Part shown: one piece after another, positions 16,833 through 58,676 of the stretch | Position numbering within the stretch: position 1 is the first letter of the stretch | Layout: each line of letters starts with the position of its first letter | NCBI GenBank assembly: GCA_004431415.1 | Contig: QPMI01000166.1 | Coordinates: 106,042 to 170,041, forward strand | Direction: 5' to 3' | Origin: Cyanophora paradoxa CCMP329 | Lineage: Eukaryota; Plantae; Glaucophyta | DNA: 64,000 bases | Made by a program: the position numbers and the translations under genes | Notes under the pieces: model-generated | The model's input: the letters and a program-made list of their open reading frames with translations, nothing else | Database searches by the model: none | Told to the model about the DNA's origin: nothing

Positions 16833-19800
16833 CTACTTCTTGCCGCCCTTGCCGCCGCCGCGGGAGGTGACGGGCGCGCCGGGCGACTGCGTGCCGGGCC
16901 CGCCGAGCTCGCTGGGCCGCCGCTTGCTGCCCGAGGCGTGGTCGGTGGGGGAGGGGAGCGGGTTCAGCGCCGCCTCCGCTGCGGCGAGCGCGGCGGCGGC
17001 CGCCTCCTCCTTGGCGCGCTGCAGCGCCTCCTCGCGCTGCCTCGCGATCGCCTCCCGCTGCTGCGCCCGGATCGCCTCCAGGCGCCTGCCCGGGCAGGCC
17101 GCCGTCAGGGAAGAGAGTGAGGGGGCGGGGCGGGACGGGGCTGGCGGACCGGGCGTGCTCCTCGCGGTCCTGCGCCTCCCGCTCGCGCTCCTCGACCTCG
17201 CTCGCCAGCCGCCCGCGCCGCCGCCCCGACGCCCGCGCCGCCAGCGCCGGCGACACCGCCAGGAACATCGGCGCCGCCCCGGCGCCGCCCCGCGGGGGCG
17301 AGCCCGGCGCGCCCCGTGCACGCTGTAGTAGGAGCCCGGGGCGGGGGTCTCGGGGGGAGGAAGCTCGAGTTGAACGAGGCGGGGCCCGGGGAGGGGAGCG
17401 CCCCGGCGCCGGGCCCCGCGCCAGCGCCGAGTAGGGCCGGCCCAGCGGCGAGGTCGCCCGCGGCGGAGGGGGTACGCCAGGTCCTCGGGAGGGCCCCGGG
17501 GCCGGCGCCGGCGCTCGAGCGCGCCGCCGCCGCGCGCGCCGCCTCCCCGCCCGCCAGTGCTCCTCCGCCGCCGCCGCCCGCTGCGCCGCGAGGAGAGGTG
17601 AGAAGGGGGGGGGGGGGGGGCAGAGGGGGGTACGGCGGGCCTTCTCCTCGAGCTGTTCGGCGACGCGGAGGGAGCGGAGGAGGCCGACGAGGCGGGTGGC
17701 CTTGGAGGCGAGGGGCGTCTCCCGCGCCTCCGAGAGCAGCGCCTGCGCGACGGGCAGCGCCGCGGGGGCCGTCGCCGGCCGCGCGCTCGCGTGCTGCGCC
17801 ATCGCCTGCAGGAAGGTCGCCGCGGGGCTCGCGGGGCGGGGCGGGCCCATCGCCGCCGCCGCCGCCCCGCCGGAGCCGGCGGCCCAGAGCGAGGCGGTGG
17901 AGGCCGCGTTGAGGTTCGTCGTGCTCGAGAGGCGCCGCACGCCGCCGCCCTCCTCGAGCTCCTCGTCCACCCCGGGGAGGGCGCGCGGGGCCCGCCGGCG
18001 CGGGGCCCGCCGGCGCGGGAGGCGGCGGCGGCGGCGGGGGCCTTGGCGAAGGCGTTGACGGCGGCGAGCTTGGTGAAGCTGTTCTGGCGGGAGCGGTTGG
18101 AGGAGGACTTGTCCGGCTGCAGGCCCCCGAGGCCCTTCTTCACCGAGCTCGCCGGCGAGGGCGACGCCGGCGCCAGCCGCTGCTGCGACCCCGAGCCTGC
18201 CCCGCCCTCAGCGCGGCCGGGCGGGCCGGGGCGGGGCGGGGCGGCGGAGCAGGGGGCGGACCCTTGAGGAGGGCTTCGGGCCCGGAGGGGACGGCGAGGA
18301 GGGCGCCGGGGCCCTCGGAGGGCACCACGGAGCTCCCCACGAAGCCGATCGCCCGCTTCTCCACCTGCCCCCCCGCCCGGCCGTCAGCGCGCCCTCCCGC
18401 ACAAGGCGACCGGCGCTCGGGCGCGCCTCGCGGACGGAGAGGGCGACGAGGTGCATCCACTCGTCCGCCCGCTTGGCTGCCCCGCCCCCGCCCGTGAGCC
18501 GGGGCGCCGAGCGAGGGCGGGCGGGCGGAGGAGGGCGGGGGCACCGAGGGTGAAGACGGAGGCCGGGGTCGTGGAGCGGCCGCTCGCGAGCGCCCGCGCC
18601 TCCTCGATCACCTGCGACATCGAGCTCTGCGGCGCCGCGTCACGGGCACGGCGGGGCGCGGGAGGGGGCGGGGCGGGGCGTGGCGCGCGTGGAGGTGGGC
18701 GGCGATGTCGCCGAGGCGGCCGAGGACGGCGTCCGACTGCGCCGCCGAGCGCCGCGCCGCCTCCGCCTCGGCGCGCGCCGCCTCGGCCGCCCTGCGCGCC
18801 TGCTCGGCCGCCTGGTGCGCCGCCTTGACCTCCCGCTCCGCCCGCGTCGCATCCTCCGCCGCCCGCTCCGCCTGCCGCTCCGCCGCTGCCCTCTGCCCCG
18901 CCGCCCCCGCAGGCCCTCGTCCCGCTGCGCGATCACCCCCTGCGCGCGCGCACGCCCGCCGCCCCGCGTCGCCTCGGCGCGGCTCGTGGCGTGGGGCCGG
19001 GGGGCGGGGCGGGGCACCTCGTAGTGGGCGGCGAGCTGGTCGCGCTGCCGCTTCTCGCCCTCGGCCTGCGCCCGCACCCGCGCCTCGAAGTCCGCCTGCA
19101 CGTCCTGCGCCCCCGCCTCGCCCCCGCGCCCCCGCCCCGCACGCGCCCCGGGCCGGCGGGGCGGACCTGGAGGCGGAGGCGGATGTCCGCCTCGAACTTG
19201 CGGCGCGCCTGCTCCGTCTTCGCGAGCTCCTCGGAGAGGGCCTTCTGGCGCCCCCGCCACACCCCGATCTTCTTGTCGAGCAGCAGCCGCGCCCGCTGCC
19301 GCTCCGCGTCGTTCGGCGCCATGTTGATGATCAGGTCCTCGGCCCACCCGACGATCTCCTCCATCTGGCGCCCCTGGCCCGCCACCGTCCCCTCCATCCC
19401 CGCGATCCGCGCGTTCGCCTCCGCCAGCGCCCTGCGCCCCGCCCGCGTGGGCCCTCCGCCGCCCGCTCGCCCCGGCTCGCCCGGCGGGGGCGGGCAGGGG
19501 GCGGACCAGGTGAGCTCGTCGCGCTTGCGCTCGGCGTCGCGGGCCTGCTGCTCGATGGCCTTGAGGGCCTCGACGTCGCCCTTGAGGCTCGCCGCCTCCC
19601 GCGCCGCCAGCGAGTGCGCCTCCCGCGTCCGCCGTGCGCCTCCTGCTCCGCCCGCAGCTGCCCCCGCGCCGCCGCCGCCTCGTCCTTCAGCCCCGCGATC
19701 CGCGCCTCCCGCTCCCCGCCCGCCGCGATGACCCGCTCGTGCGCCCGCTGCCGCATCTCGTCCACCGCCGCCGCCTTCGCCAGCGCCGCCACCGTGCGCT

Positions 19801-22640
19801 CCGCCAGTCCCGCATCGCCCCTTGAACTCGTCGTACCGCCGCCGCTCTGCCCCCGGCGGCTCGCGCGCGGGCGGGGAGCGGGGCGGGGGCGGGGCGGGGG
19901 CGGACCGGCGGCGGCGAGGGCGGCGCGCTCGCCGATGGTGTACTCGACGGCCTCGCAGAGGGCGGCGAGGTCCTCCTCGAGGGCCCGCACCGCCCCCGCC
20001 TTCTCCTCGCTCGCCTGCTTCGCCGCCGCCAGCGCCCCGCCTTCACGCTCAACGTCTTCTTCGAGCCCCCGTCCCCGGGGCCCGCCGCCGCGAGCGCCCC
20101 GGGGACCGGGCGGGGGCCTGCGGGGCGGAGGCGAGGACGGCGGCGGCGGCGGCCTCGGCGGCCTGCTCGCGGTAGTGGGCCAGGACCGCGCTGAAGGCCC
20201 GCACGAGCTCCCGCCGCGCCTCCTCGTTCTCCTGCGCCCGCCCCGCGGTCTGAGCCTCCCTCCCCCGCCGCGGGCGGGGGGGCGGGCGGACGGAGCGGGC
20301 GTCGAGGAAGGCGGCGAGCTCGTCCTCCAGCGCCGCCTCCTCCTGGAACACCGTCTGCCCCCGCGCCCCGCGTTCGGCGTTCGGCGTTCGTGTGATCGGG
20401 CGGGCGGGCGGGGCCGGGGGAGGTGCTGCGGGGGCACCTCGACGGCGCGGAGGCCGGCCTCGGCGGCGAGGCGGGCGCCGGCGAGGGCCCCGTACACCTC
20501 GTCCCCCGCCCGCAGCTCCCGCTCCGCCGCCTCCCGCCCCGCCTCCGCCCCCGCCGCCCCTCCGCCTCCGCCCGCGCCTGCGCCGCCGCCTCGTTCGCCG
20601 CCGCCTCCGCCCGCTGCCGCGCCGTCCGCTCCGCCTCCAGCTCGTACAGCGCCCGGTCCACCTGCCCCGCGCCCCCGCCCCTCAGCGGGGCCCCTCCTAG
20701 CGCGCCGGCGGGCGGGCGGGCGGGCGGGGCGGGCCTCCTTCTTGAGGCGGGCGATCTCGCCCTCGGTGTCGCCGCGGCCGGCGAGCTCGCGCTGGAGGTC
20801 CCCCTTGGCCTTCTCCGCGGCGGCGCGCGCCGCCTGCAGCTCCTGCGTGGCCCGCTCCAGCTCGGCGCGCCACGTCTCCCGCTCGGGCACCGGCTGCCGC
20901 GGGTCCCGCGCCCCGCGTCCATCATAGGCCCGCCCTGCGGCGCCGGGCCGGCGCGGGCCCAGGGGCGCGGGGGCCCGCCGCGGCGCAGGGCCTCGGGGTT
21001 GGTCGGGGGCGGCTCGTAGGGCCCGAGGCCGAGGTCTTTGAGGCGCGTCGGGTCGATCCCGTGCAGCTCCGCCTCCACCTGCCACACCCGCCCCGTCTCC
21101 AGCGCCCACAGCTCGCTCGTGCAGTACCCCGTCTGCCCCCGCCCCGCCCCGCGTCGGACCGCGCCCCGCCGCGCCGCGCCGCGCCCCTTCTGCAGGCACG
21201 CGCACGTCGTTGAGGCCGCCGAAGCAGTAGAGGGTCGCCCCGAGGGCCGCCAGCGAGTGGCCCGCCCGCCGGAAGGGGTACGTGTCCTCCCCGGGCAGCC
21301 GCGTCCACGTGTTCGTCACCGTGTTCAGCACGTACACGTCCTGGGCGAGCGGGGCGGGCCGCGTCGGCGGGTAGGCGGAGGCGGTGGAGGGTAGGGGGGT
21401 ACCGGGAGGATGTTGCGGAGGGCGTCGCGGCCGCCGACGACGTAGATGCGGGGCCCGATGGCGCAGACGGCGTGGTCCATGCGCGCCGCCGGCACGTCCG
21501 GGCCCGCCGGCGACAGCGACGTCCACTCCCACGCCTCTGCGCGGCACCCCGCTCCGCACGCGCCCCCCGCGCCCCCTGCCTCTTGCGGGGCGGGCGCACC
21601 GAGGTCGAGCACGTCGACGGTGAGCGTGTTGGGGCGCGAGCTCGGGCTCGAGCCGCCGAGGACGTACATCTGCCCCGGGCGGGCCGCTCAGCCCGCCGCG
21701 CGCCCCCTCCCCACCCCCGCCCCCCGCCCCCCGCACCTTGTTCCCCACGAGGGCCGAGGCGTGGCCGTGCGCGGCGGGGGGTACGGTGCCCTTCGTCGCC
21801 TGCTTGGTCCAGCGGAGCGTGGCGAGGTCGAGAACGAAGACGTCACGGCTGTACGTCACGGGGAGGCTCGCGCTGTGGCCCCCCCACGTCACCAGCTTTC
21901 CGTTCCACGCCACCCTGCGAGGGTATCGATTAAGCTTTGTGAGGCCCCCCGCCTGTTCGGGCTCGCACCCCGAGACGTGCAGCCGCGCGGGCGGGAAATC
22001 GCCGCTCATCTGCAGGGCGGGCCTTCAACAGCGCTGTACGGCGCCGCCGCAGGCGCGGGTGGGGCGGGCGCTCGCCTGGTGGTTCCTCCAGTCGGGGTGG
22101 TCCGTGTCCAGCCCGTGCAGCGCCCACAGGTCGACGTGGCACTCCCGGACCTCCTTGACGAAGTCGCCCTCCCCGCTGAACACGAACCTGCCGCCCGCGT
22201 CAGCGGCGCAGGCGCCGCGGCACGCGCCGGCGCTCGCATTTTGCCGCCATACACCCAGGACAAATGGTAGCAGCGACCCTGCGCGCGCCGCCAGCGAATC
22301 AGCCACGAGAGCAGCAACAGGCCGGGAGGGCCGATGGGGAGGCCCGGCAGCACCGGCGGGGGCAGATTGGTCTTCTTTAGCTGATTCCATTGCTTTGTCG
22401 TTGTGTCAAAGGCAGTCAGCACGTTCAGCCGGCCCTTGCTCGCGTTCAGGCCGCTGCGGGGCTGGGTTAGCTAGGCCAGTTTCGCGAGCTTGGGCAGCTG
22501 TCGGGTTGGGGGCCGAGTCACCCAAAGAGAAAGATGGCTTCATCGTATGCACAGAGCGATGTCCCCTCCGACCCAATGGGCTGATTCTTCGCGGACGCCT
22601 CCAGCTTCTGCCAGGCGGGGGCAGCCGCAGTTGATGCCAT
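16833..22640 (-). CDS. Kelch-repeat beta-propeller followed by long coiled coil and low-complexity tail
   Basis: PIGSEGTSLCAYDEAIFLFG, KLVTWGGHS...DVFVLDLATLRW, PPAAHGHASALVGNKMYVLGG, PAARMDHAVCAIGPRIYVVGG, RRAGHSLAALGATLYCFGG; then E/A/R/Q heptads; ends GGGKGGKK*. One gene assumed across the span. Confidence 0.8.
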
Positions 22641-24811: not shown

Positions 24812-25700
24812 CGCCTCGGGGAATCGACCCCGCGACACCCGCGAAACGAAGGGAACTCGAAACCGGACCAGCTTCGAGGCGGCCGTCCGCTTCCGCGGGT
24901 CGAGGAGAGCAGCACGATGCCGCCGCACTCGCGTTCCGCCCGCCGCACCTCGGAGGGCGCCCTCGGCAGGTTTCGCGGCTCCAGCATCGGCCCGCAACCC
25001 CAGCAACGAGAGAGGCAGCAGCGGCGCGCTAGATGCTCGCCCTCGGTCGCGAACTCGCCCGCACGGCGGCCGCAGCCGCCCCCGCGTCGCTCGCGGGCCT
25101 CGGCCCGGCAGCGATCGCACGGTCAGCGCCCATGGCCACCGCGGCTTCCCTGATCGCTTGCAAGGCGTTCGGCATGTTCAGACGCGCCGGTGGCCTTCCC
25201 GAAGTCCCGGAGGGGAGCGCGGGGCTGTCTCCCCAATTGCAGGCTAAAGGCCTAGACCTTTCTTCCGTCCGGCACCTCGCACTGCAAGGCCCGCGGCCGC
25301 CTGGCGTCTGGTCTTCGCCCGCCCTCTCTGCATGGCGCGGTCTGCATTCTGGCGCGGCTGCCCGCGCCGGGACAGGCCCCGGCTCCGGCTCCAGCTCGGA
25401 GGGCGGTTCTAGATCCGACAAGCATGCTGGCGGCCATGGCCAGGGCGCTTCCGCACGCGGTGTGCTCGCCAGCATTACTCTGCCTTAAGCTTCCCTCTTA
25501 ATTAGCTTCGGCGCCGGCGCCGCAGACGGCCGCGGCTTTGGCCTCCTGGACGCCCTCGGATCCGGAGTACTAGTCGCTGGTGCGGCCGGCCTCTACATCA
25601 AAGCACGCGACGCTTGCCATGCCGAAGCAACCGGCGGAGGGAGCGAAGAAAACAAGGAAGACGGCGAGGCTCCTGCCAGCTGCAGTTCGCCAGGTGTTGA
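24812..25700 (+). repeat. Copy A of an inverted segmental duplication (upstream region plus first two exons); partner about 32360-33290
   Basis: Long near-identical blocks such as GAACTCGAAACCGGACCAGCTTCG and CACCTCGGAGGGCGCCCTCGGCAGG occur reverse-complemented at 33055-33260. Confidence 0.93.
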
Positions 25701-25954
25701 GGACCCTCCGCACACGCTTGTTTCTCAAGACAGGCCTTGACTAACGTGATCTCAGCGGCTCCAGCTATCACACAATCTGACGAATCCGCTTGTACAGTGA
25801 CCCGGATCCGTGCGCGCGCCTTGCAATTGAGGTTTTGCTCTTGACGCGCCGTTACAGAGAACCTGCCCAAGGCTGCTAGGCTTCTTATGGTGCTATTGGA
25901 TGTGGTTTTTGATTACATATGCCTTAAGGTACCTGTTTTCACATGTTGCGAACA

Positions 25955-25985
<31 letters not shown>

Positions 25986-26249
25986 TGATCAGGATCATAA
26001 TCCACGGCGCACTAACCCAGGTGGCCAGAAAGGCTTGCGATCTTTTCTTCCCTCAGTGGGGTATCAACGACGAAGACCTTGAATTTATTATAGATATCTG
26101 CTCAAGCTTACCCTTCATTGTCTCCGGTTGTGACCCCCTCAACTGCATTGTGCTGCACGTTTGGGATTTCATGTCAAGTTTTTCAAGACGTACGATCAGA
26201 TCATGTCGTCAACCTTAGAGCTGACAGATCTATAGTAGATTTGGAGTGA
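25033..26249 (+). CDS. Orphan protein, paralogue A: mitochondrial-type presequence, TM segment, ACHAE motif, hydrophobic C-terminal region
   Basis: MLALGRELARTAAAA...WRGLHSGAAARA; GFGLLDALGSGVLVAGAAGLYIKARDACHAE; NLPKAARLLMVLLDVVFDY. Homologous to 31757-33054 with shared intron positions. 3' end uncertain (26218 or 26249). Confidence 0.65.
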
Positions 26250-26294
26250 TTTTCTTCTAGGAGTGATCATGATCTTTTTGGAAATTTGGATGAT

Positions 26295-26700
26295 CGACGT
26301 CGCGTCATGGCACGCTGTCCGGGGGATATCGATCGATATCCCGGGATCTTGCAATTAAATATTGGGCCCCGGGGGTGCGCATGCGCATGCGCATGCACGG
26401 GCGCGCGCCGCGCTCGTGGGCACGTACGCGTATACGTACGCGTACGCGTAGCTATAGCCTAGTAGCTGCGCATGCCGACGCACGTACGCGTACGCGTAGC
26501 TCCGCTGCCTGCTCATACCGACGTACGCGTGTAGCTGCCGCAGTGCCGCGCGCAGTACTAGCGCGAGCCTAGTAGTACTAGTGCGCATGTCCGTCCGACG
26601 GTCCGCGCATCAGTACGACAGCCTGATCATGAGCCCCCGCATGCGTACGTGTGCGTCTAGGTCTTCATGATCAAGGCTTAATATAAGCCGCTGAGCTTCG
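26295..26700. repeat. Palindrome-saturated tract of self-complementary hexamer microsatellites and alternating purine-pyrimidine runs
   Basis: 20-bp perfect palindrome GGGATATCGATCGATATCCC (26323-26342); (TGCGCA)3.5 at 26376-26396; CGTACGCGTATACGTACGCGTACGCGT at 26423-26449; AGTACTAGT; TGATCATGA; TCATGATCA. Confidence 0.92.
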
Positions 26701-26914
26701 AGTCCGAAATCTGCTCAATATCGATGTCTTACTTGCAATTTGATCCGGCTGCAGCTGCCAAGGCTGATCGGACCACGTGCACTGTACCCGCCGAGCAATC
26801 GGCCAAAAAAGTCGCTAGCGTCTGAAGCTCGAGCTGATCGAGCCGAAGCCTATGCACGCCGTGAGGTGATCGAGCCAACGCAGCCGGCACGCGCGCGGCC
26901 GCGGCACCGACGGC

Positions 26915-29900
26915 ATGACCTCAAACTCGCAGCCGCTCGCGGCCGCGGCGGTGAGGTTCGAGCGGCTGCCCGACCGCGGCAACAACAGCCCTCCCCAGCG
27001 CACAAGCACGGCGGCGGCGGCGTGCGTCGGCGCGATCCAAGGCGAGCAGCGGCCTTGCATAGTCATCTACGGCGGTTCCGCTCCTCTTCCGCTCGATGAC
27101 TTGTGGGCTTACGACGTCGGATCGACCTCGTGGATCAAGCTGAGCCCGCGCGGCCCGGCTCCGCCGCGGCTGGAGTTTCCCGTGTTCGTGCGCCATAGAC
27201 TTCCGAAACGAGCGCGTCTGTAGCTCGCGTCGCCCATGTACATTGCGACGCAGGTGTACGCAAGGGGCGCGCTCTGGTTGTGGGGCGGCTGCTCGGGCCC
27301 CATCCAGACGGGGCCCAACATACGACTCGTGCTCAACGACACGATGTGGAGGTGCGGGCCCCGGGCCGTGCGCCTCCCGAGCCGCGGCTCGCTCGGTCGC
27401 TGCGCCGCTGATCCGACCCGCGCCGAACCCAGGCTCAACCCGCAGACGTGGACGTGGGTCAGCGTGCGGGCGAAGGACGCAAAGAGCGCGCCGGCGGGAC
27501 GCTCGGGCGCCCTCGCGCTCGTCGACGAGGAGCGCGGGCGTCTCATCGTCTTCGGCGGCTGCGGGGACGAGATCGCCAACCCGGACACGCCTCAGATGGC
27601 CGACCTCTGGATCTTCTCCTTCGTCGATGCGTGCGCCGCTCGCCGCGCCCCCGCGCCCGCAGCCTCACCGCTCGAGCAGGTCCTGGGCCGAGATCAGGCG
27701 CGTGGGTTCGCAGCCGTGGCCCGAGCCGGTCGCCGGCGCCGCCGGCTGGTGCGCCCCCCCGCCCCGCCCCGGCTCCGCTGCGGCCCGTGGCCGATCGGCG
27801 CGGCGCAGGCTGAGCCCCGACGGGAGCTGCTTCGCCGTGTACGGGGGCAGGCGGAACCAGAACTGCGAACCCAGTCCGCCCCGCCGGCCCGGGCGCGCGC
27901 TCTACCGTGAGACCCGCGTCGCTGACGCGTCACCCGCAGCGCCGGTGGCGGACGGCTGGCTCTTCCACCTGGGCGAGGCCCGCTGGGAGAGGCTGCCGGC
28001 GCGGCCCGACGGCCCTGGCCCCCTCGAGGAGGCGGCCTGCGCGAGCTTCGGCGGGGCGCACCTGCTCTTCGGCGGCGCGGCGCCCGGCGAGCGCTTCTCC
28101 GCCGGCTGCTGGGCCTTCGACCTCGCCGCCGCCCGCGCCGCCGCCGACCCCTGGCGCCCCTCGCCGCCTCCGGGGCACCCGCCCCACGCCGCGCGCATGC
28201 TCGGCGCTGGTCGCCCTCTCGGGCCCCTCGGGCGGCGCGCAGCTGCTGGCGCTCGGGGGCCGCGCCATCGCCGGCTCGCGGGCTGTCTCCTACATCTCCG
28301 AGGTCTTCCGCCTCACCCTCGCGGGCCCCGCTCCGCCGGCCCCGGCACCCGCCCCGCCCCGCCCCCGCCCCCGCCCCGCCCCGCCCCTTCCCCGCCCCTA
28401 CTGCCCCGCCGCTAGCGATCGCCGCGGGTTCTGGTTCGGGCTCGGCCGCGGCAGAGGCGCCGCGGGGCGATGCGGCGCGGAGCCGGTCGCCGACGCCGCC
28501 GCGGAGCCCGTCGCCGGAGCCGCAAAACAGGAGGCCGACGGGTGAGGGCCAGCCGTCGGGAGCAGCAGGGCAGGGCGAGCCTTCGGCGGCGGCGAGCCGG
28601 CCGGCTCCGGCTCCGGAGGCGCCTCGAAGCGAGCCTGGGGCGCCGCCGGGCCAGCCGCCGCCGGCGGCGGCGGAGGAGGCGGGGCCGGGGCAGGTGGGAC
28701 AGTTGGCGGAGCAGCTGCAGAAGGAGCTAGCGCGGGCGCGGCGGGCGGAGGAGGGCGCCGAGAGAGCTCGCGATTTTGAAAGGTGCCGCCGCCGCGCCCG
28801 GCGCGCGGCTGGCCGGGCGGCGGCCGACCCCCGCGCAGGAAGGCGCACGAGGCGACGAGGAAGAAGCTGGCGGAGGCCGAGGCGGCGCGGCGGGCGGCGG
28901 AGGCGCAGCTGCGGGCGGCGGAGAAGGCGCGGCGGCAGGCGGAGGCGGAGCGGGACGGGCTGCGCTCCGCGAAGGAGGCCGCCGAGGCCGCCGCTGCCGA
29001 GGCGCGTAGCGAGGCGGAGGCGCGGGCGCGGGAGGAGGCGCAGCGCTCCTACGCCAGCGGCGTCGAGGCCGGCCGCAAGCTCGTGCGCCCAAGCATGCGC
29101 CCGGCCGCGCCGCACCGTTTCCTGATCGCGGCGCAGGGTGCTGAGCTGCACGAGCCGCTGCGGGCGCGGTTGAAAGCCGCGGAGGCCGACGCGAAAGAGG
29201 CCCGGAGCAAGGCGGAGGCGGCGCAGAAAGAAGCGGGGGCGGCGCAGAAAGAAGCCGAGGCGGCGCGCGCTGCGCTGGCGCGGGCACAGAAGGTGCGTCG
29301 GTCTCGGGACTGCCCGGCGCCGTCGTCCGACAGCGGCGCAGGGTCTGGAGCAGCAAGAGGCGCTGCGTGCGCGGGCGGATGCGGCTGAAGAAGGGGCGCG
29401 GAGGGAGGCGGAGGCGGCACGCGGGGCGCTGGCGCGGGCGGAGGAGGAGGCGCGGGCGCGGGAGATAGCGCACCGCTCGCAAGTGAGCAGCTTGGAGGCG
29501 GCTCTGGAGACGGTGGGCGTCGGCCAAAGCCGCTGGGCGCCGTTTCCTCACAGCGGCCCAGGGTGAGGAGCAGCAAGAGGCGCTGCGGGCGCGGGCGGCG
29601 GCGGCGGAGCTCGCTACGGCGGAGGCGCGGGGCGAGTTGGAGGCGACGCGCGGGGAGCTGGCGCGGGTGCAGGAGGCGCACCGCCTCCAAGTGAGCGTCC
29701 TGGAGTCCGTTCTGAAGAAGGTGCGCACCGGCGGAGTTGCACCCGGCGCCGCGTTCCGACGGCGGCGCAGAGGGCGGAGCTGCAGATGACGCTGCAGGTG
29801 CGGGCGGAGGCAGTGGAGGCAGACGCCAAGGAGGCGCGGAGCGAGGCGGAGGCGGCGCGCGCGGCGCTGGCGCGCGCGGAGGAGGAGCTGCGGCAGCTGC

Positions 29901-31202
29901 AGTCCCGCCCGAGCGCCTTCGACGCCCGTCTGAAGGCGGTGGGCCTGTGCTCCGGCCCGCACGTCGCTTGCGCTCTTGTTCGACCGCGGCGCAGAGCGAG
30001 GAGCAAGTGGAGGCGCTGCGGGTGCGGGCGGAGGCGGCGGAGGCGAGCGCGGCGGGGGCGTGGAGGGAGCTGGAGGCGGCGCGCGCGGCGCTGGCGCGCG
30101 CGCAGGAGGAGGCGCGGCGGAGCTACGCGAGCGCCTCCGAAGCCCGCCTGAGGGTGCCCACACACTCCCGCGCTGGGACCGGCCTAGCTCCCTCATTCCG
30201 TCGCCGGGGCGCAGAGCGAGGAGCAGTACGGGCTGCTCCTGACGCGGGCGACGGAGGCCGAGGAGCGCGCGGAGGCGGCGGAGGAGGCGCTCGAGAGGCT
30301 CGCGCTGCGGGCCGAGCTGGCGGGGGCGGCGGTGCAGGAGCTGGAGGGGCGGGCGGCGGGGCTGCAGCTCGGCCCCGCCCCGCCGGCCCCGGCGGCGGCG
30401 GCGGCGGTGCTCACGGTGGAGGCCCTCGCCGGCGTCCCCGCCGCGCGGCTGCAGCGGATGCAGCAGGAGCTCCTCGAGAGCGTCGCCGCCGTTGCCGCCG
30501 CCCTCCACGCCGCCCGCACCGCCCGCGCACCGGCCGAGGCCGAGGAGGAGGGGGCGGAGGAGGCGGTATGGGGGGCCGAGGCCGAGATGCAGTCCCGCGG
30601 GGGCCGCCGGGACCGAGGCCGGGGCCGGGGCGGGAGAGGGGGCGCCTCGAGCTCGCACCCGCGAGGCGCGGTGGCCGGCAGCGGTGCCGCTGCGCCCCCT
30701 CTGCCGCCTGGTCTGATGTCTCTGATCGCGCCGCGGCCGCGCGCGTGCAGGCGGCGACTTTGGCTACACGGAGCGGGTGTTCGGGGCCCCGCAGAGCCCG
30801 AGCGAGCAGCTGCAGCCGGCCGCAGACGTCGGCGTGCAGCCCGGGGTGGCGACGAGCGGCCAGCGCGGCGCGCGCCCTCGCGGAGGCGGCGCCCGCGGGC
30901 GAGGCGGCCGCGGAGCCCGTGCGTCGCCTGCTTTTCTTCCTTCGCAACCTGCTCCCTGTCCGTCGACCTTTGATCCAGGAGGCTATCCGGAGGAATGGCC
31001 CTCTGTGGATTTCGAAGCGACGCAGGAGCCTCGGCCATGGCCTCAGGCGGCCGGCCAGACCTCGGGCCAGCCCCGTGGGGCGCGCGGCCGGCCGCGGGGC
31101 CGGGGCGGAGGCGGGGGACCGGGCCCTGCACCGGCGCAGGAAGATGCTCCGGCGGTGCAGCTGCAGGGGGCGGGTGGCGTAGCGTGGCGGCCCAGGGCCT
31201 GA
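26915..31202 (+). CDS. Kelch-repeat protein with modular coiled coil and RGG-rich C-terminal tail
   Basis: IVIYGGSAPLPLDDLWAYDVGSTSWIKL, ALWLWGGC, RLIVFGGCG...ADLWIFSF, HLLFGG; repeated EEQQEALRARAEAAE-like exons; tail RGGRRDRGRGRGGRGG, RGGGARGRGGRG; TGA 31200-31202. Confidence 0.8.
29137..30290 (+). repeat. Tandem array of about 6 homologous exon+intron modules (phase 0-0)
   Basis: Exons 29137-29292, 29342-29512, 29562-29720, 29771-29938, 29995-30153 (156, 171, 159, 168, 159 nt) and start of a sixth at 30215. Introns of 49-61 nt share GGCGCCG..TCC..AC.GCGGCGCAG. Confidence 0.85.
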
Positions 31203-31238
31203 GGGCCGAAGGCGCCTAGTGCTGGCGTACGCCAAGAC

Positions 31239-31600
31239 ACCCCCCTCCCTCCCAAACCCCAACACCCCCTCCCTTCCAAACCCAAACCCCACCCCACGCC
31301 CCTCCCCCTCCCCCCCACCCCTTCTCCCCCCCTCCCACCCCACCCCCCAACCCAAACCTACCCTCCCCTTCCCGGTCCGTAATCCCGGGCCCTTCCCTCC
31401 CCTCCTATCGGCCCCCCCCCCCCCTTCCCCTCCCCCACAACCACCACGACCCGCTGCAGCTCACGGCGAGAACACCGCTCGGTTTTGCAGGCGGTTTGCG
31501 ACTTCAACTGCCCCCTCCCCCATCCTTCCCCCTCCCTCCTCCTCCCCTCCCCCTCCGCCCACCACCTTCCACATGCACCCTGCGGCGGCCTCCCCCGCTC
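31239..31600. repeat. Strongly C-skewed low-complexity tract (CCCAAA/CCCT runs; G-quadruplex potential on the minus strand)
   Basis: CCCCCTCCCTCCCAAACCCCAACACCCCCTCCCTTCCAAACCCAAACCCC...; almost no G over 31239-31370. Confidence 0.8.
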
Positions 31601-31756
31601 GACCCTGACGTCGACCTCGGGCAAATCAAAATTTAAAATCGCGCATGCGAGGCCAGCATTGATGCATGCCGCCAAAGCACGAGGCACCGGCCGGCGTCAA
31701 TTTTTCTAATTTGATGAAAAAAGCACTAGATATAACTTCTTAAACGATCTGTAGTT

Positions 31757-33054
31757 CTACTCTAGGCCTGTCACTTCTCATATACTGATGATACGAAATT
31801 GAAATCGAACGCGAAATCCTAGATATCAAATCCCGAACGCGCAGCACGACTTCGCTGAGGAGGTCAATATCGCACACGTAGAGCGCCAATGAGCCGGCAG
31901 CTATGGCGAGTTGAAGGACAGAGTCGATAGACATCCGCTGGCTCACGGTCATGACCATCATGACCATAGGCTCAAGAATTTGAATTCGAGGCGCCCACTG
32001 ACGAATTCTAGCCACCCACCGAGAAACTCGAGGGCGCTGTGAGCGAAGAAAACCGCCGACCATTTCTTTTACCTGTATTTGGTGTATATGCGCAGTAGAT
32101 CAGCATAGAAGAGAAGATCTAGATCAAGGAAGAACCTGAATCACCTTGGACACGATCTCGAAATATTCAAGCCCGAAATACATCAACTTTACAAGAGCTC
32201 TCAGAGACTTGGGGAGTTCCTCTTTTCGAAGCGGATTTGAAGCGGCGGCCTCCGGCCCTGAAGCATCGCCAAATTGCGCAACAACCGGCGCTGAGCATGA
32301 TCGCGTTAGCCTGTATCTCAGCGTGCGCGGAGGGCGGGAAGGACGTGCAGAGCATGCACCTGGCGAGCTGGTAGGAGCATCACCGTCTTCCTTGGTGTCG
32401 CCGCTCCCTCCGCCGGCTGCCTCGGCATGGCAAGCCTCGCGTGATTTCAGAACATACACGGCGGTGCCGGCGACTGCGAGGGCGGCGCCGGCGCCGGCCA
32501 GGAGACCGAAGCCGTCTGCGGGGTGAATCGATTAATCATGAGATGCAACAGGGGAAGGAGGCCGTCATGGGGAGCGCACCGCGTGCGCGAGCGCTTTGGC
32601 CGCCAGCACTCTTGTCAGATCTAGATCTAAAGCCGCCCTCCGAGCCGGAGCTGGATCCCGCGTCTGCCCCGGCGTGGGCGGCCGCGCTAGAATGCAGAAC
32701 GCGCCAAGCAGAGAGGGCTGGCGATGACCAGACGCCAGGCGGCCGCGGGCCCTGCAGCGCGAGGGGCCGGAAGGTTGACACGGGCGACAGCCTCGCGCTC
32801 CATACTGGGCCGGCGGGAAGGCCATGGCCACCGGCAATTGGGGGAGACAGCCTCGCGCTCCTCTCGAGGACGCCGGGAAGGCTACCGGCGCCGGCGCGTC
32901 TGAACGTGTCGAACGCCTTGGAAGCGATCAGGGATGCCGCGATGGGCGCCGACTGTGCGATCGCCGCCGGCCGCGGGCCGAGCTCGAGGCCCGCGAGCGA
33001 CGCCGGGGCGGCTGCGGCCGCCGTGCGAGCGAGTTCGCGACCGAAGGCGAGCAT
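31757..33054 (-). CDS. Orphan protein, paralogue B of 25033-26249
   Basis: MLAFGRELARTAAAA...WRVLHSSAAAHA; GFGLLAGAGAALAVAGTAVYVLKSREACHAE; ELPKSLRALVKLMYFGLEY; DLLSEVVLRVRDLISRISR. Exon 1 has an internal duplication of about 60 nt (32780-32890). 3' end uncertain (31740 or 31757). Confidence 0.65.
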
Positions 33055-33290
33055 CTAGCGCGCTGAAGCCGCCTCTCTCGTTGCTGGGGTTGCAGGCCGA
33101 TGCTGGAGCCGCGAAGCCTGCCGAGGGCGCCCTCCGAGGTGCGCCGGCCGCGGGCGGAAGGCGACTGCGACGGCATCGTGCTCTCCTCGGCCGAAAGAAG
33201 CGAATGGCCTCGAAGCGCTGCGAAGCTGGTCCGGTTTCGAGTTCACTGCGTTTCGCGGATGCCGCGCGGGGTCGACTCCCGGAATCGCCA
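32360..33290 (-). repeat. Copy B of the inverted segmental duplication
   Basis: Reverse complement aligns to 24812-25700 through the upstream region, exon 1 and exon 2. Confidence 0.93.
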
Positions 33291-33608: not shown

Positions 33609-36336
33609 ATGTTCATCCCCAAGGGCACACTCGGCGCGCACGTCCGCAAAGTGCCGCCGCCGCTGCGATATGCGCTGCATCGGACGTTTGCATCGACGTC
33701 AGACACCGCCGTCGTCGTCGGCACAGGTCAGGCGCTGCCGTACAGCCGCGGCGCTGTGCTCTGCATCGCATTCGCCCCCGTTCAACGGCGCCGCACTCGC
33801 GCAGGCATCGCGGGCCTGTCCGCGTGCCAGGTCCTCCGCAAGCACTTCAAGAACGTGCGGCCGCGTACGCGCACGCCGGCGCACGCGCCGCCAGCCGACC
33901 GGCGGCGACGCTCGCGCAGGTGGTGCTGGTGGAGCGGGACGCGGTGGACGACCCCGCGGTGGACGGGCGGCCGCGCAAGGGCGTCGCGCAGAGCCGCCAC
34001 ACACACTTTCTACTCTCCGGCGGCCGCGCCTTCCTCGAGGAGCTCTTCCCCGGCTTCACGGAGCGCGCCGTCGCCGCCGTCCGCCCCTCCTCCGCTACCC
34101 CACGCTGCCGCCTGCAATCCGAGTCCCGCGCCTGCGTCAGGGCGCGCTCGAGGTCGACGTATGCCGTGACATGATCCTCGTCCGCCCCCGCGCCCCGCGC
34201 GCCCCGTCGGGGCGGGCTCGCTCGGCGGCCTCCGACGGGCGGGCGCGCAGTGCATGAAGGGCCAGACCAAGCCCCGCTTCCCGGGGCCCCCCGACCTTCT
34301 CACCATGAGGCCCGCCGCCCCTCCCTGCGAGATTCCGCACCCGCTGAAGCCTCCGTAGCGCCTCGCGCCCACTGTACGAGTCGCTGCTCCGGCGCGAGGT
34401 CAAGAGCGCGACCCACGGGGGGTACGCTGGACCGTCTCCCTCGCCGACGCCGTACCGCCCTCCCCCTCCGAGCCGTACCCCGCAGGCGCCTCGAGACGCT
34501 CAGCCGCACCGTTGCCACGGGCCTCCTGCTCGACGACGGCCGGTGCGCCCTGTACCCCCCTTGTGCCTGCCCCCGTCGCCCTTCTCTGAGCTCGCGCTCC
34601 CGCGCAGCGTCCGCGGCGTGCGGGTCTCGCAGGAGGGGGGCGCCGAGACGCCCGTCGAAGCCGACCTCGTCGTCGACTGCTCGGGCCGCACATCAGAGGG
34701 CGCGCCCCGCCCTGTACCCTCCGCACGTCCCCCCACCGCCCGCGGCTGACCTGTGCCCACAGTGCCGAAGTGGCTGGAGGCCGCGGGGGTGCCCCGGCCC
34801 CCGGAGCTCGTGGTGAACAGCTTCCTGGGGTACACCTCCCAGGCGCGTTTTTCAGATCGCGCGCGCCTGTACCTCCTGACGACCAGCAGATGTTCGAGCC
34901 GCACAAGGACTGGAGCCCCGAGTGCGTCGGGGGCCGCTTGGGCCGCACACCCGCCTCTCCGCGCGCTCTGATGGTGCCGGGGACCCCCGCAGGCAGTGGA
35001 AGGGCCTCCTGGTGGGGGCCTCGCCGCCGGACAACCCGCGGGGCGGCGTCATCCTCGCCATCGAGGAGGGTGCCCCGCCCCCGCCCCCTCCCCCCGCCCC
35101 TCGTCGCCGAGCGGGGCGCAGGGAAGTGGATCCTCACGCTGGGCGGGGCTGCGCGGGACCACCCCCCCACGGACCGCGAGGGCATGCTCGCCTACATGCG
35201 CTCCCTCGCCCGCCCCGGTGCCCCCCGCCCGCTCCCTCGCCCTCCCGGCCCCGCTGCCCGGCCGATCGGCCCCCGCCGCCCCGCAGAGATCTACGAGCAC
35301 ATCTCGCGAGCCACGCCCCTCGGCGAGGTGCCCGCGGGCCGCCCCGTCCCCCGCCCCCCGCCGCCTCCGCCGACGGGCCCCCGCCGCAGGCGTACGCGTA
35401 CCGGCGGACGGCGAACCAGTGGCGGCAGTGGCACAAGGCGCGCCCCGACCCCCCGGGGGCGCTGAAGGCGGGAGCGAGCGGGGCGCGGGCAGGTGGCGGG
35501 GCTGCCGGCGGGGCTCGTGTTCCTCGGCGACTCGGCCTGCTCCTTCAACCCCATCTACGGCCAGGGCCCGTTCCCGCCTCCCGCCCCCGCCTAGGCCTCT
35601 GAGCTCGCGCTGAGAGCGGGGGCAGGGATGACCTCGGCGGCGCTCTCGGCCAAGTGCCTCGGCTCCGTCCTCGCCCGCGGCCTGGCGCGCCCGCCCCCCT
35701 CGCCCCGCCCCGCGTCCCGCAGCGGGGCCCCTCACGGGGGGGCCCGCAGCACCCCGCCTCCCCCGAGTTCCAGGGGGCGTTCCTGAAGGAGCAGGCCGCC
35801 CTCCTCAAGTCCTTCTGGCTCTTCGCCACCGGCACGCCCTCTTGCTTGCTCTCGCCCGCCCCCGCGCCGGCGCTGAGGGGGCGGGGGCAGGGGAGGACGC
35901 GAAGTACCCGACGACGGAGGGCCTGCAGCCGTCCCCCCTCGACCGCTTCATGCACAAGCGCGCCGCCCCGCCCCGCCCCCGCCCGGGCCTCCCCCGGAAG
36001 TGTGAGAAGGGGGCGGGGCCAGGTACGTGGACGGGCTGCTGCTGAGCCGGACGAGCACGCCGGAGAGCGTCGCCTCCTTCTACCAGGTCATGCACATGGC
36101 GCGCCCGCACCCCGCCCCCTCCCCGCCCCCCGCCCCGCCCCTCCTGAGGGCGGGGCCGGCAGGTGAAGCCGCCCCAGGAGCTCTTCAGGCCCCACATGGT
36201 CGCCAACGTCCTCAGGTCCCCGCCCCGCCCGCCCCGCCCCCCGCCCCGCGGCGCCCCCGCCCCCGCCCACCCCGGCGTGCGCAGATACTACTTGACGGAG
36301 GACCGCTCGGCCCCCGCCCCCGCCTCCTCCCCGTAG
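33609..36336 (+). CDS. Bacterial-type FAD-dependent oxidoreductase/monooxygenase (epoxidase/hydroxylase-like), multi-exon
   Basis: AVVVGTGIAGL (Rossmann), VVLVERD, RKGVAQSRHTHFLLSGG..LEELFPG, ADLVVDCSGRTS, VFLGDSACSFNPIYGQGMTSAAL; ends YYLTEDRSAPAPASSP*. Confidence 0.88.
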
Positions 36337-37187
36337 GCCCCGCCCCCGCCCCTCTCCTCACTTGTGGCCGCCCATCCCGCCGCCAACGTAGCAATTGCAA
36401 ATCGGACTCCTTTGTGAGAGCCGTGCCCAGATCTAGAGCTTTAGAGCCGGGGCCTCCAGTCAGGTTCGTTTGCGCGAGCCTGCCTCCCAAGAGTCTCTCT
36501 CGCCGCGGGGCCCCCGATTCCTGCTCTCCCCCTCTCTCTCCCGAACACAGTGGGTGCGAATTCAGTGATTCCCGGGTTCCGACGGTCCTCGAAGGGCGCG
36601 AGGTGGCCTACTAGGGCTAAAAGGGACGATCATCGGGTGACCTATAGCTAGGCAGGCCTAGAGTCCAACAGTACCGGTCAGGGCCCGCCTCTGCAAATTT
36701 TATTGGCGATTTTTGGAACCTGCACGGGCACAGAAATAAACCTGAAGCCTTGATCATGATCAAGACTGAACCATGGGAAAGCCCGCGGCTCGCCGAGTCG
36801 GCGGCCGTGATTCCTGAAGTGATCCAAATTCGAAGTTCAACCTTTGAATTCACCGCACGTGTCAACTTGCCAAACTCGACAATTGGCAAGGCCTCAATGT
36901 CTGACCGTCGGACAGCAGTGCAGATCTAGATCTAGAATAGCACTGCCGCAGTGCGGCACTAGAACTGCCGGCCCAGCCGCTTAGGTTACAGGTGACTCGA
37001 CAGTTGCCAGTTGGAGGCCCATGGAGTCTGGAGAGCACGAATGCAGATCTAGAGGTTCTCTGGTGAGGTGAAGCTTGAGCCTGGCAAGCCCACTGGGCCA
37101 CTCATGAAGTTGGCGAGTCACTTCAACTCGGCAAGTTCAATCATGCAGCTGTCAATCATGATCACACGTCCCTCGCCCGGACTACAG

Positions 37188-40100
37188 CTACGAGTGGAGG
37201 GTGTACCCGAGTTCCTCGCTCCAACTCTCGCACTCGGTGAGCAGGTGCACCTGCGCGGGGCGGGGCGGGGTGGGCGGGGCGGGGGCGCGGGGCGAGGGCG
37301 CGGGGGGCGGGGGGTACCTGAAGAGACTCGAAGTCGGGGCAGGCGGCCCCGCACAGGGCGCACTCCTCCCCCGCCCCCGCCCCCGCAGCCGCCCCCTCCC
37401 GCCCGGGCCCCGCCCCGCGCCCCGTGCCCCGCTTCCCGCGCCGCCTGCCCTCGCCCCGGGGCGCCGCCGCCTCCTCCTCCGCCCCCTCCTCCCCGCCTCC
37501 GAGTCCACGGGGCTCGCCCGCATGCGCTTCCCGCTCCGCGTCGTCGCCTCCTGCGGGGGCCGTGCGGGGTGAGCGCAGCGCGGGGGCCCGGAGGGGCCTC
37601 GGGCGGGGTCGGACCGGGGCCTCGTGGGCGGGGCGGCCTGGGCGAGGGCGTGGGGCGCGTTGGCGGCGAGCCAGGCGGCGCACTCCTCGGGCCCATCACT
37701 TCCGGGGCTGCGACCTCCCTGCACGCCCGCGGTGAGCTCGGGCGGGGCGGTGCGGGGCCGTGCGGGGGCGGGCCGGGGACCGGAGGGCGGCCTCCTCCTC
37801 CTCCGAGCGCGCCACGCCCGCCACCAAGTCCGCCCTCTCCCCCCGCCGCCCTCCCCTCCGGGCTCCCCCGCCCTCCCGCGAGGCGGCGGGGGCCGGCGGC
37901 GGGGCGCGCAGGAGCTCCTCGAGCTGCCGCCGCCGCTCCGCCGCGCTCGCCGCCGCGTGGTCGAAGCCGCCGGCCCGATGACCCGCCGCTGCCGCGCGGG
38001 CCGCCCCGTTGGCGGGGCCCGCGGCGCCGCGCCGGGGCGGGCGGGGGACCTCGGCGGCGAGCTTGCCCTCCGCCCGCTCCGCCATCGCCTCCTCCACCCT
38101 GCGCCGAGCGCTCGGCGCGGCGGGGCGGGCGGGGCGGGCGGGGCGGGCGGGGCGGACGTGGGCCCCGCCCTCGGGGTCGCAGGTGAGGAGGCGGATGACG
38201 AGGACGGGGCGGCTCTGCCCCAGCCGGTGCGCCCGCGCCTCTGCGCAGCAGCCTTCGCCGGGCCCCGCCGCCGCGCGCAGGAAGGCGGGGCGGGCGGACC
38301 GGCCTGGGCGTCCGAGTGGGGGTTCCAGTCGACATCGTAGAGCACGACCGTGTCCGCCGCCTGCCCCCCGCCCCCGCCCCGTCGGATCGGGCGGGACCGG
38401 AGGGGCGGGGCGGGGCGGGGCGGGGCCGGGCCTGGAGGTTGAGGCCGACGCCGCCGGCGCGCGTGGAGAGGAGGAAGACGAAGGCCTCCGAGTCCTGTAC
38501 CCCCGCCCCGCCCCCGCCCCGGCCTCGCTGGAGGCGGAGGAGGCGGGGGCGGGGGCGGCGGGCGGGGGCGCACGGGGCGGTTGAAGTCGGCGATGACGGC
38601 CCCGCGCTCCTCCGCCTGCCCCCGCACCGCCCTCGGCGGCCTCCCACGCGGCGGGGCGGGGCGGGGGGGACCTTGGTGCGGCCGTCGAGGCGGAGGACGG
38701 GGTAGCCGCGCATCCCGCACCACTCCTCCAGCACGTCCAGCACCTGCCCGCCCCGCGCGCCCCGCCTCAGCGGCCCCCGCCAGCGAAGCGAGGCGGGGCG
38801 TGTCGGGGCGGGCCGAGGTCATCTGAGAGAAGACGAGGAGGCGGTGCCCGAAGCGCCGCAGCTGCCCCCGCCCCGTCGGGTGCGCCGCGGCGGCGGGGAG
38901 GGGCGGCCGGGCGCGGACGACGGGGGCGAGGGCGTCGAGGACGGCGAGCTTGCCGGCCGCCCGCACCAGCCCCTCGTCCACCCCGTACTGCCCCCGCCCC
39001 CTCAGAGGGGTAGAGCAGAGGGGCCGGAGGCCGGGGCGCGCCTCGTCGAAGAGGAGGAAGGGGTGGTTGCAGATCTTGCGCATCTGGGCCGGCGCTCAGG
39101 GGCCGGGGCGGGGGGCCGCGGCGGGGGCGGGGGCGGGCCTGCATGAGGGCGTTGCTGAGGGAGGCGAGGGCGGCGCGCCCCGCCGAGGCCCTCCCGGCCG
39201 CCCCCTCCCGCACCTCCCCGTACAGCCGCCGCTGCAGAAGCCGGAGGCGGTGAGGGCCGCGAGAGGGAGAGGACGGGGGGGGGGGGCACCTGGAGGGCGC
39301 TCATGGGGCAGCGGATGGTGACCTGCGACTTCTCGGGGACCTGCGCCCCGGGGATCAGCGCGGCTGGGGGGGTGGATCCGAGGGGGGGTAGCGCGCGCCT
39401 GGAGCCCGGGGACGTCGGCGAGGCGCCGGCGGAGGAGGAAGGGCCGCAGCACCTGCGCGGCGGCCGCCTGAGCGGAGGGCTGGGGGGAGGGGGGGAGGGG
39501 GAAGCGGAGGGGTACGGCGTGGAGGCGCTCGGTGACGAGGAGGCGCTCCTCCGGGGAGAGGTCGCCGCCGGGCTCGAACGCCGCCTCGAACCTGCCGAGC
39601 GCAGGCGTGGGGGAGGGGTGCAGGGCAGGGGGCGGGGCGGGGGCACCACTCGTGGAAGGCCTCCTCGGGGCCGAAGAGGCCGGGCAGCGTGAAGTTCAGC
39701 AGCGCCCACAGCTCCCCCAGGTTGTTCTGCGCCCCAGGTCGCCCCGCCGCCTCGGGCCCTGCACCCCGCCGCCCGCGGCGGGCACCTGGAGGGGCGTGCC
39801 GGAGAGGAGGAGGCGGCGGGCGACGGGGACGGAGGAGAGGGCCGCGGCGAGGCGGCTCCGCGCGTTCTTGAGCCGCTGCGCCTCGTCCACGATCTGTGCG
39901 CGCGCGTCGACGGGCGGGGGCGGGGCGGGAGGGGGTGGAGGGCGGGCACGAGGTAGGACCAGCGGGCGCGGGCGAGGAGAGAGGCGTCCGCGATGGCGAT
40001 CTCGTACGTCGTCAGCACCACCCTGCCGCCCCGCCCCGCCTCAGGCCGGCACGGGCCCGGGGCGGGGGCGGGGCGGGCGGGGCGGGCGTGGCGTGGCCGC

Positions 40101-57457: not shown

Positions 57458-58676
57458 CGAACCTTCGAGAATTCGCGCGCTGCGCATGCGGTCAGCGCTG
57501 CTGCTGGACACGCGCGAAGGTGCCACGGTGCGGCGTACGTGTATATACGCGTTAATGCTTGCGAATATTGCGCCTCTGACGCCGCTGGCGGCCGACCACG
57601 ATGAGCCTTGAGATCTAGATCTAGATCGGAGGCGATGCCTGCTCTGCGCTCCGACTCTGCGAAATGGATGAGTCAATAATGAGCTCCGGATCCGTCGCGG
57701 AACTCGCGGCCCGGGCCGCCCGCGGCCGGCGGGCGGCGGCGGCGCCGGCGGCTCGGCGGCGGGCCTCCGATGATGCGCATGCGAACACCGTGAGCGGCGG
57801 TGAGCCTCGGAGGGCCGGTGAGGCTCGAGAGCTCGCGCGCTTCAACTTAGCCTTCAAGGAATCAATTGCAGGGCTTGAGGTTGCGCATGCGAGTACGTCT
57901 TGCGGCGACGTTTAGGACCTGGGAGGTACCGACAAAAAACCCCAAAACCCCGAACCGGTGCATGGCGCAGGCTCCTCGAAGCCCGCAACTTCGAATTCGG
58001 CAAAAAAAACCAATTCACACGTACCGCACGGTACCGGCCACGGTACGTACTAGCTACCGGGGGTATATGGCTCCTCGATGGCTCCTCGCAGCCCGCGCCG
58101 CGCCCCAAAGATGTTCTTCTGTCTTCGAAACGGAATCGTATTTGACTCGATTGAAAAACCGATTGATTGGGGCGCGAACCGGTCGATTATTGAACTTGTC
58201 AAGTTCGCAGGCGCTCTTTCTGGCAATAAAAAACCATTCAAGTTGATCAGGAATCAGGATTCGCGGGCGATTTCGAATGCGGCGATGGTGGATGGTGTAA
58301 ATTATAATTACGTACCCCTGTCTGCATATGCTCAATCTACCTGTACGTATACCCCCCAATATACCACGTGCACCTTGCCAGCTATCTCAAGCTTAATTAG
58401 CCTATCTAGCCTGGCAATATGAGCTACTAGTAGCTGTAGATAATGGTAGTTGATTAAGTTAGATCATTAGGCGTCGCTTTTGTTGCTAAACGATCTTCCT
58501 TACTAGCATGCATTCGTACAAATTTTAAATAAAACACAAGAAAGTTCTTCTGATACCGCGTATGCCGCGGAATGCGTGCTTCGAATTGGAACTCGAATTC
58601 AGAGCCTGGCTGCAGATGTAGACGGTTTTTTCATGCGCCCTGAAACGGCCCCCAACTGCAAGGAGCGGCGGGGCGC

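Follow-up and report, generated by a model that had tools for sequence, protein, structure and literature searches.

Inverted triplet insertions in the genome of Cyanophora paradoxa as probable excision scars of a hairpin-forming DNA transposon

Hairpin-forming elements such as Ac/Ds are generally recognised by the palindromic footprints, templated by the flanking DNA, that they leave behind (PMC4561436, PMC5499845), and both flank hairpins and palindromic footprints derived from the flanks are known for hAT, Transib and MULE elements (PMC5499845, PMC4561436). For mPing, which makes a 3-bp duplication, repair is guided by the microhomology that the target duplication provides (PMC4561436). Here we analyse a stretch of 64,000 nucleotides (nt) from the glaucophyte alga Cyanophora paradoxa CCMP329 (contig QPMI01000166.1, positions 106,042 to 170,041; the whole stretch is called the window), in which a triplet X is frequently followed by its reverse complement, rc(X), and then by itself. 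The resulting 9-mer X-rc(X)-X, a gain of 6 nt over X, is referred to below as an XYX unit, and a companion form, X-C-rc(X)-G-X, gains 8 nt. XYX insertion is the main class of short insertions and deletions (indels) between two paralogues located in the window and a major component of the window's non-coding DNA. We consider it probable, if by no means certain, that the units are scars of a hairpin-forming cut-and-paste DNA transposon with a 3-bp target duplication.

XYX units in a pair of paralogues

The window has a G+C content of 72%. Paralogues A and B form an inverted duplication in convergent orientation around approximately 6.7 kb of unrelated, mostly GC-rich DNA (24819-33280; all coordinates are those of the window), and their similarity (82.6-86.6% identity by self-BLAST) spans the upstream region, exon 1, the intron and the second block, and ends there. 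The open reading frame (ORF) of A runs from the ATG at 25033 for 143 codons, to about 25461, while that of B, which begins with the ATG at 33054, corresponds to the first 74 amino acids of the EukProt gene model tig00000691_g3186.t1, listed without a database hit in the supplement of the genome paper (PMC6704402). This places the window on contig tig00000691 of that assembly, and the gene of paralogue B is an orphan. In protein searches, which were run exon by exon, the exon-1 ORF of A matched solely B's own gene model, and no third copy was found. The reading frames of both A and B stay open; since the A/B mismatches fall on codon positions 1, 2 and 3 in 14, 15 and 22 cases, respectively, coding constraint on these "exons" is weakly evidenced. 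The two paralogues and the units that they contain are as follows, with the basis of each assignment in brackets.

24819-25695 (+): paralogue A, with upstream region, ORF, short intron and second exon-like block (self-BLAST, alignments, translation)
32366-33280 (-): paralogue B, inverted relative to A (self-BLAST, alignments, ORF from ATG 33054)
25130-25138 (+): CCA-TGG-CCA, A only, one adjacent substitution required (alignment)
25291-25299 (+): CCG-CGG-CCG, the sole XYX unit common to A and B, in B at 32740-32748 (alignment)
25434-25442 (+): CCA-TGG-CCA, exact 6-nt gain in A (alignment)
25484-25492 (+): CTT-AAG-CTT in the intron of A, where B has just CTT (alignment reading)
25527-25535 (+): CGG-CCG-CGG, exact 6-nt gain in A (alignment, unit-removal test)
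25558-25574 (+): GGA-TCC-GGA and AGT-ACT-AGT with one base in common, gains of A (unit-removal test)
25677-25685 (+): CAG-CTG-CAG in A, one adjacent substitution required (alignment, unit-removal test)
32484-32498 (-): GGC-GCC-GGC-GCC-GGC, double unit in B, 12 nt gained (unit-removal test)
32617-32628 (-): AGA-TCT-AGA-TCT in B, alternatively a tandem TAGATC duplication (alignment)
32822-32830 (-): CCA-TGG-CCA in B, in a poorly aligned stretch (alignment reading)
32887-32895 (-): GGC-GCC-GGC in B, alternatively a tandem GCGCCG duplication (alignment)
32968-32988 (-): CGG-CCG-CGG (32968-32976) and GAG-CTC-GAG (32980-32988), two exact units in B that fill a single 12-nt gap (alignment)
33145-33153 (-): CGG-CCG-CGG in B, upstream of ATG 33054, one adjacent substitution required (alignment)

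An earlier note on this DNA had listed such 9-mers in A (starting at 25130, 25434, 25527, 25558, 25566 and 25677) and in B (33145, 32968, 32980, 32887, 32822, 32617/32620 and 32484/32487/32490), and all of them were found where it had placed them, with eight triplet pairs among them, as it had counted. Together A (25033-25695) and B (32366-33175) contain 21 XYX 9-mers, compared with 2.1-2.5 expected from Markov models fitted to their own composition and with a maximum of 10 reached in 500 simulations. A and B have a single site in common (25291/32740), which is either older than the duplication or a chance match.

When rc(X)-X was taken out of an XYX unit wherever this improved the A/B alignment, this greedy test yielded eight events, five of which close a gap exactly and three at the cost of one mismatch beside the unit. 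The differences that consist of exactly X in one paralogue and XYX in the other are CTC-GAG-CTC together with CCG-CGG-CCG in B (the 12-nt gap) and the units of A at 25527 and 25434. The units at 25130, 33145 and 25677 each need one extra neighbouring substitution, which is no anomaly, because about four of 14 events are expected to have one at 15% divergence. Exon 2 is of equal length in A and B and shows no net gap, yet the two copies align badly. With four of A's units and two of B's removed, the alignment score of exon 2 rises from 118.5 to 146 and an ungapped block of approximately 87% identity appears; in 2000 trials in which equally many 6-mers were taken out at random, no score as high was obtained.

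The overall tally of the A/B comparison is about 14 XYX events and about 105 substitutions. It had been proposed in the earlier note that almost every short indel between the paralogues is of this kind. This is true of most of them, but "almost every" is too strong, since other indels exist: a 3-nt difference in an AGC repeat, a duplication of about 60 nt in B, and gaps of 1 nt and 4 nt in a poorly aligned stretch. The longest of these lies at 32785-32861 (-), where B is about 60 nt longer than A and a direct repeat of 16-17 nt, GGAGCGCGAGGCTGTC, is found at the bounds; either B gained it by tandem duplication or A lost it, and it does not belong to the XYX type. As read from the alignment, the counterpart in A of the unit at 32822-32830 holds a decayed unit, AGG-CCT-AGa.

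Enrichment and distribution in the window

Across the window 268 XYX 9-mers are present, compared with 84-95 expected under Markov models of orders 1 to 5. The excess becomes much larger when asymmetric, AT-containing units are counted (115 compared with about 10-10.6 expected, 10.9-fold), and AT-containing X-C-rc(X)-G-X is found 21 times with 0.5 expected (42-fold). Null models were also fitted separately to low-GC DNA (less than 66% G+C, 12.6 kb) and to high-GC DNA. The low-GC fraction holds 79 XYX 9-mers (3.6-7.8 expected, 10- to 20-fold) and 17 occurrences of X-C-rc(X)-G-X (0.2-0.4 expected, 40- to 70-fold), while the mirror form X-G-rc(X)-C-X is found there once (0.2-0.45 expected). In the high-GC fraction 80 XYX 9-mers are observed with 39-50 expected, and X-C-rc(X)-G-X shows no excess (5 compared with 4.8). 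An XYX excess in coding DNA was considered and rejected as non-specific: in GC-rich coding DNA XYX is enriched 1.6-fold, whereas any 9-mer of period 6 is enriched about 1.9-fold in high-GC DNA. Because composition statistics give no specific signal in coding DNA, the A/B alignment is the sole evidence at the coding level.

The signal is specific in both the length and the arrangement of the repeated word. No excess was found in the window for 2-nt words (125 compared with 111 expected, 1.1-fold), for 4-nt words (3 compared with 0.6, which we take as no excess), for plain 6-nt palindromes considered separately, or for any of 15 other spacer pairs, the mirror pair included; a partial inverted copy of one or two bases between the X copies is found at 1.06-1.34 times expectation, which is no meaningful excess. 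In low-GC DNA neither X-X-X nor X-reverse(X)-X, used as controls, is enriched, and a middle triplet that is merely complementary or merely reversed gives 4.9-fold and 1.2-fold, respectively, against 15-fold for XYX; the weaker complement-only excess is attributed to the registers of hexamer arrays. What looked like a 2-nt counterpart of the 8-nt form proved to be a by-product of TGA/TCA units and was discarded. The units use 24 of the 32 triplet classes with a mild preference for TCA/TGA, GCA/TGC and ATC/GAT and without any preference in the flanks.

Iterative removal of perfect units from low-GC DNA took out 81 units of 6 nt and 26 of 8 nt (8.3 and 0.3 in simulations), which make up 5.5% of low-GC bases. 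Every round of removal exposes further units, and thus units sit inside older units. Forms with one mismatch number 454 with 247 expected; this excess implies roughly twice as many slightly decayed as perfect copies and hence a long-running process. The units cluster in six hot zones (2-3, 16-17, 25-27, 36-37, 52-54 and 56-58 kb), with few in other low-GC stretches. The hot zone next to paralogue A illustrates their density.

26255-26700 (no strand): intergenic hot zone adjoining A, with 18 perfect units of 6 nt and six of 8 nt removed iteratively

It shrinks from 446 to 290 nt upon removal, i.e., 35% of it consists of perfect copies, and it holds X-C-rc(X)-G-X at 26364, 26455, 26536, 26593 and 26686 as well as arrays of the units TGCGCA and CGTACG. 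Arrays of palindromic hexamers (TGCGCA, CGTACG, AGATCT, TCATGA) are 2-3.5 units long. Those at 26376-26396, 26435-26449, 26483-26497, 36922-36936, 55613-55627 and 57611-57625 have 2.5-3.5 units; they result either from several hits on one triplet or from slippage that followed seeding. An uninterrupted run of about 23 C (25957-25979) lies in low-GC DNA downstream of A. The segment 54000-56100, whose GC content is among the lowest in the window (0.59-0.60), has some codon periodicity and is poor in XYX next to its neighbours at 53-54 and 56-58 kb, and might be coding or of foreign origin.

Among the ten longest ORFs of the window two have Pfam matches, and both are apparently interrupted by introns.

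19331-22009 (-): ORF of a Kelch-repeat protein
49939-51567 (+): ORF with Pyr_redox_2 (pyridine nucleotide-disulphide oxidoreductase)

An attempt to polarise XYX through these two genes was dropped, as their XYX sites are GC-only or apparently not insertions; the L-Q-L at 51558, for example, is presumably no insertion, judging by related enzymes. Five ORFs of the window have no entry in the protein collection, and internal repeats at 29.3-30.1 kb are of low complexity and uninformative.

Origin of the units

Every unit is flanked by direct copies of X, and its inverted middle is the full rc(X) without a loop, as expected of a hairpin-type footprint. The fixed length of 3 nt suggests a stagger set by an enzyme. 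The inverted copy adjoins X with no loop at all, which points to an opened covalent hairpin and not to snap-back priming, for which a loop is needed. The presence of two direct copies of X in addition to the inverted one argues for an insertion that duplicated its target, given that a simple nuclease cut gives X-rc(X) only. The earlier note had inferred that a fold-back insertion process is the dominant indel mechanism in this genome. What stands of this, on the scale of the one window, is that a stereotyped insertion converting X to X-rc(X)-X is real and is the main class of short indels between A and B; fold-back or snap-back as its mechanism is disfavoured by the fixed 3 nt, the zero-loop palindrome and the C/G companion form. 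These features favour transposon excision, with covalent hairpin ends beside a 3-bp target duplication, which the earlier note had named only among the known minor sources.

The scenario that we favour may be outlined as follows. Insertion of an element would duplicate 3 bp of the target, giving X...X around it, and its excision would leave both flanking DNA ends as covalently closed hairpins. Opening of a hairpin 2-3 nt past its tip would produce a 3' tail that is the reverse complement of the flank, i.e., P nucleotides: the last bases of X would appear in the left tail as their reverse complement, and its first bases would make up the right tail, which lies on the opposite strand. Being derived from one triplet, the tails could anneal, and gap filling would then give X-rc(X)-X, a 6-nt gain, whatever the exact position of opening. 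Scars would thus be uniform because the identical flanking triplets make both tails complementary, and such joining would work only where the duplication is as short as the tails. If one terminal base of the element were kept at each tip (C at the start and G at the end), the product would be X-C-rc(X)-G-X, an 8-nt gain, and the constant C...G of this form fits retained element termini. We infer in particular that insertion was followed by excision, that the chemistry involved hairpins and that joining was guided by the duplicated triplets.

Scars of this origin would pile up where they are tolerated, i.e., in intergenic DNA and introns, and in weakly constrained coding DNA such as the A/B pair only in the 6-nt form. 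The 8-nt form is absent among the approximately 14 A/B events (a chance of about 0.02 given the non-coding ratio of 81:26), and this, together with its lack of excess in GC-rich DNA, fits selection on the reading frame. The nested, clustered and decayed state of the units suggests the expected residue of long-running hopping, and a rough estimate of our own suggests that ordinary transposition rates would suffice, since scars accumulate while the copy number of the element stays constant.

Several points weigh against an origin by excision. The 64 kb yielded no element that has terminal inverted repeats together with a 3-bp duplication, none with CACTG or CACTA ends and no site in which an element still resides, despite more than 100 perfect scars. 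Inverted ends, exact or near, were sought in combination with a 3-bp duplication, as were repeats, CACTG, CACTA and CACAG ends up to the full length of the window, and X-CAC...GTG-X, and these searches gave only GC-rich low-complexity matches. Low-complexity tracts of the GGGGCGGGG / CCCCGCCCC type are very common on both strands at 36100-41100 and in many other places, and the searches for inverted repeats were swamped because of their frequency. Products that a simpler model might give are not enriched (X-CG-X, 51 compared with 53.6 expected) or barely so (X-C-X, 155 compared with 125), and the low counts of partial inverted copies given above belong here as well. The C and G of the 8-nt form could be untemplated additions and not bases of an element. 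We know of no biochemical demonstration of hairpin formation for CACTA-type elements. Footprints of the CACTA elements of the Tpn1 family are 3-5 bp long and varied, and footprints in rice are heterogeneous, with deletions or filler DNA in 86 of 94 excisions (PMC4423477); the uniformity of the scars proposed here would thus be unusual among footprints, and it is the annealing argument that would account for it.

The units may instead be not transposon scars but a product of cellular break repair, which we regard as possible though rather unlikely. A nuclease, e.g., a domesticated transposase, would cut with a 3-nt stagger, and X-rc(X)-X would be written either by fill-in and hairpin capping of the ends or by a repair polymerase that jumps from end to end and copies back; the C/G of the 8-nt form would come from the occasional addition of one C at each 3' end. 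The lack of any element beside more than 100 perfect units would then need no explanation, the extreme uniformity of the products, so unlike known excision footprints, and the very high rate of events in A and B would be accommodated, and the symmetry of C...G looks as if the same base had been joined to both 3' ends. Such repair, however, obliges one to postulate a new nuclease and either a pair of template switches that use no homology or a novel capping step; breakage alone, with nothing inserted, offers no natural source of two direct copies of X, and an element accounts more simply for the clustering in hot zones and the constant C/G.

Short-range template switching during replication, in which the polymerase would copy 3 nt of the opposite strand and return, as in a miniature four-point model or inverted triplication, appears improbable to us. 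Its direct-inverted-direct topology agrees with known products (PMC5453318, PMC7954356), but such events should vary in length and draw on nearby sequence. The inverted copies here are always 3 nt long (neither 2 nt nor 4 nt is in excess) and show no microhomology where the polymerase would have switched, and the constant C and G of the 8-nt companion find no explanation.

Slippage of palindromic 6-nt microsatellites, in which an existing hexamer is duplicated in tandem, is very unlikely as the source of the units. Hexamer arrays do exist, and two A/B events (GCGCCG and TAGATC, both in B) can equally well be read as tandem duplications. At least five A/B gains (CTC to CTC-GAG-CTC, CCG to CCG-CGG-CCG twice, CGG to CGG-CCG-CGG and CCA to CCA-TGG-CCA) nevertheless had no prior tandem copy; the earlier note had likewise judged several events hard to explain by ordinary tandem slippage and a few ambiguous. 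The lack of enrichment of X-X-X and X-reverse(X)-X in low-GC DNA also speaks against slippage, and the 8-nt form cannot arise by it; slippage probably only extends arrays once they are seeded.

We give hardly any credence to an artefact of assembly, polishing or sequencing, or to selected palindromic binding sites, for while the assembly is based on PacBio RSII reads (PMC6704402) and several hexamers resemble known cis-elements, long-read errors do not take the form of 6-nt or 8-nt inverted copies of an adjacent triplet, no single binding site suffices for such a range of triplet classes, and the units, which are nested and most concentrated outside coding DNA, include a large decayed class and are lineage-specific indels in both paralogues.

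Significance and relation to known systems

If the units are indeed excision scars, a conservative cut-and-paste element that is invisible to normal repeat annotation can write a measurable share of a genome, a share that, with decayed copies included, is probably two to three times the at least 5.5% of non-coding DNA made up here by perfect copies, and it may rank among the main sources of two-codon, in-frame insertions in genes that evolve fast. Being uniform, the scars can be counted and dated, and they would be a rare direct record of past transposition, target choice and repair of hairpin ends in a deep-branching alga. They create dense palindromes (restriction sites and cruciform-prone DNA) in promoters, mislead aligners, as in exon 2, where an ungapped alignment conceals six events, and inflate apparent substitution rates. 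If, on the other hand, break repair is responsible, it would be the chief source of short insertions in a eukaryotic genome, routinely adding two codons to proteins, and with no transposon involved the mutational mechanism would be a new one.

The earlier note knew of no description of the phenomenon, and our full-text literature searches likewise found none of such scars; the C. paradoxa genome paper gives a figure of 11.5% for unknown repeats and is silent on palindromes (PMC6704402). Among described systems, large inverted triplications (DUP-TRP/INV-DUP) show the direct-inverted-direct order. The products of four-point template switching share this order of copies (PMC5453318, PMC7954356). 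Both of these, unlike the XYX units with their fixed 3 nt and C/G form, vary in length, need nearby inverted repeats or microhomology and form a minor class. mPing and other PIF/Harbinger elements resemble the proposed source of the scars in that two copies of a 3-bp duplication guide joining and lead to a uniform product, but mPing targets TAA/TTA, leaves overhangs and restores its site without a scar, whereas the units described here are not tied to a particular triplet and add 6 or 8 nt. In mPing the overhangs take the place of hairpins. CACTA/En-Spm (CMC) elements have a 3-bp duplication, little target preference and ends of the form C...G that match X-C-rc(X)-G-X, a comparison that extends to the first and the last base alone; they differ in that their reported footprints are varied, and the window contains no CACTA or CACTG element.

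The joint itself resembles the footprints of Ac/Ds, Tam3 and other hAT, Transib and MULE elements and the P nucleotides of V(D)J coding joints, where, as here, the duplication is joined through a loop-free reverse complement of the flank, a structure accounted for by the opening of a covalent hairpin away from its tip (PMC4561436, PMC5499845). The hAT, Transib and MULE elements make duplications of 5-9 bp and leave short, variable and often deleted footprints, whereas in Cyanophora the duplication would be 3 bp, the whole triplet is inverted and the product is nearly invariant. The scar load reaches at least 5.5% of non-coding DNA, and we found no comparable load reported for any genome. What is new relative to known hairpin-type footprints is thus that the units are uniform, are built on a 3-bp duplication and are abundant on a scale that shapes the genome.

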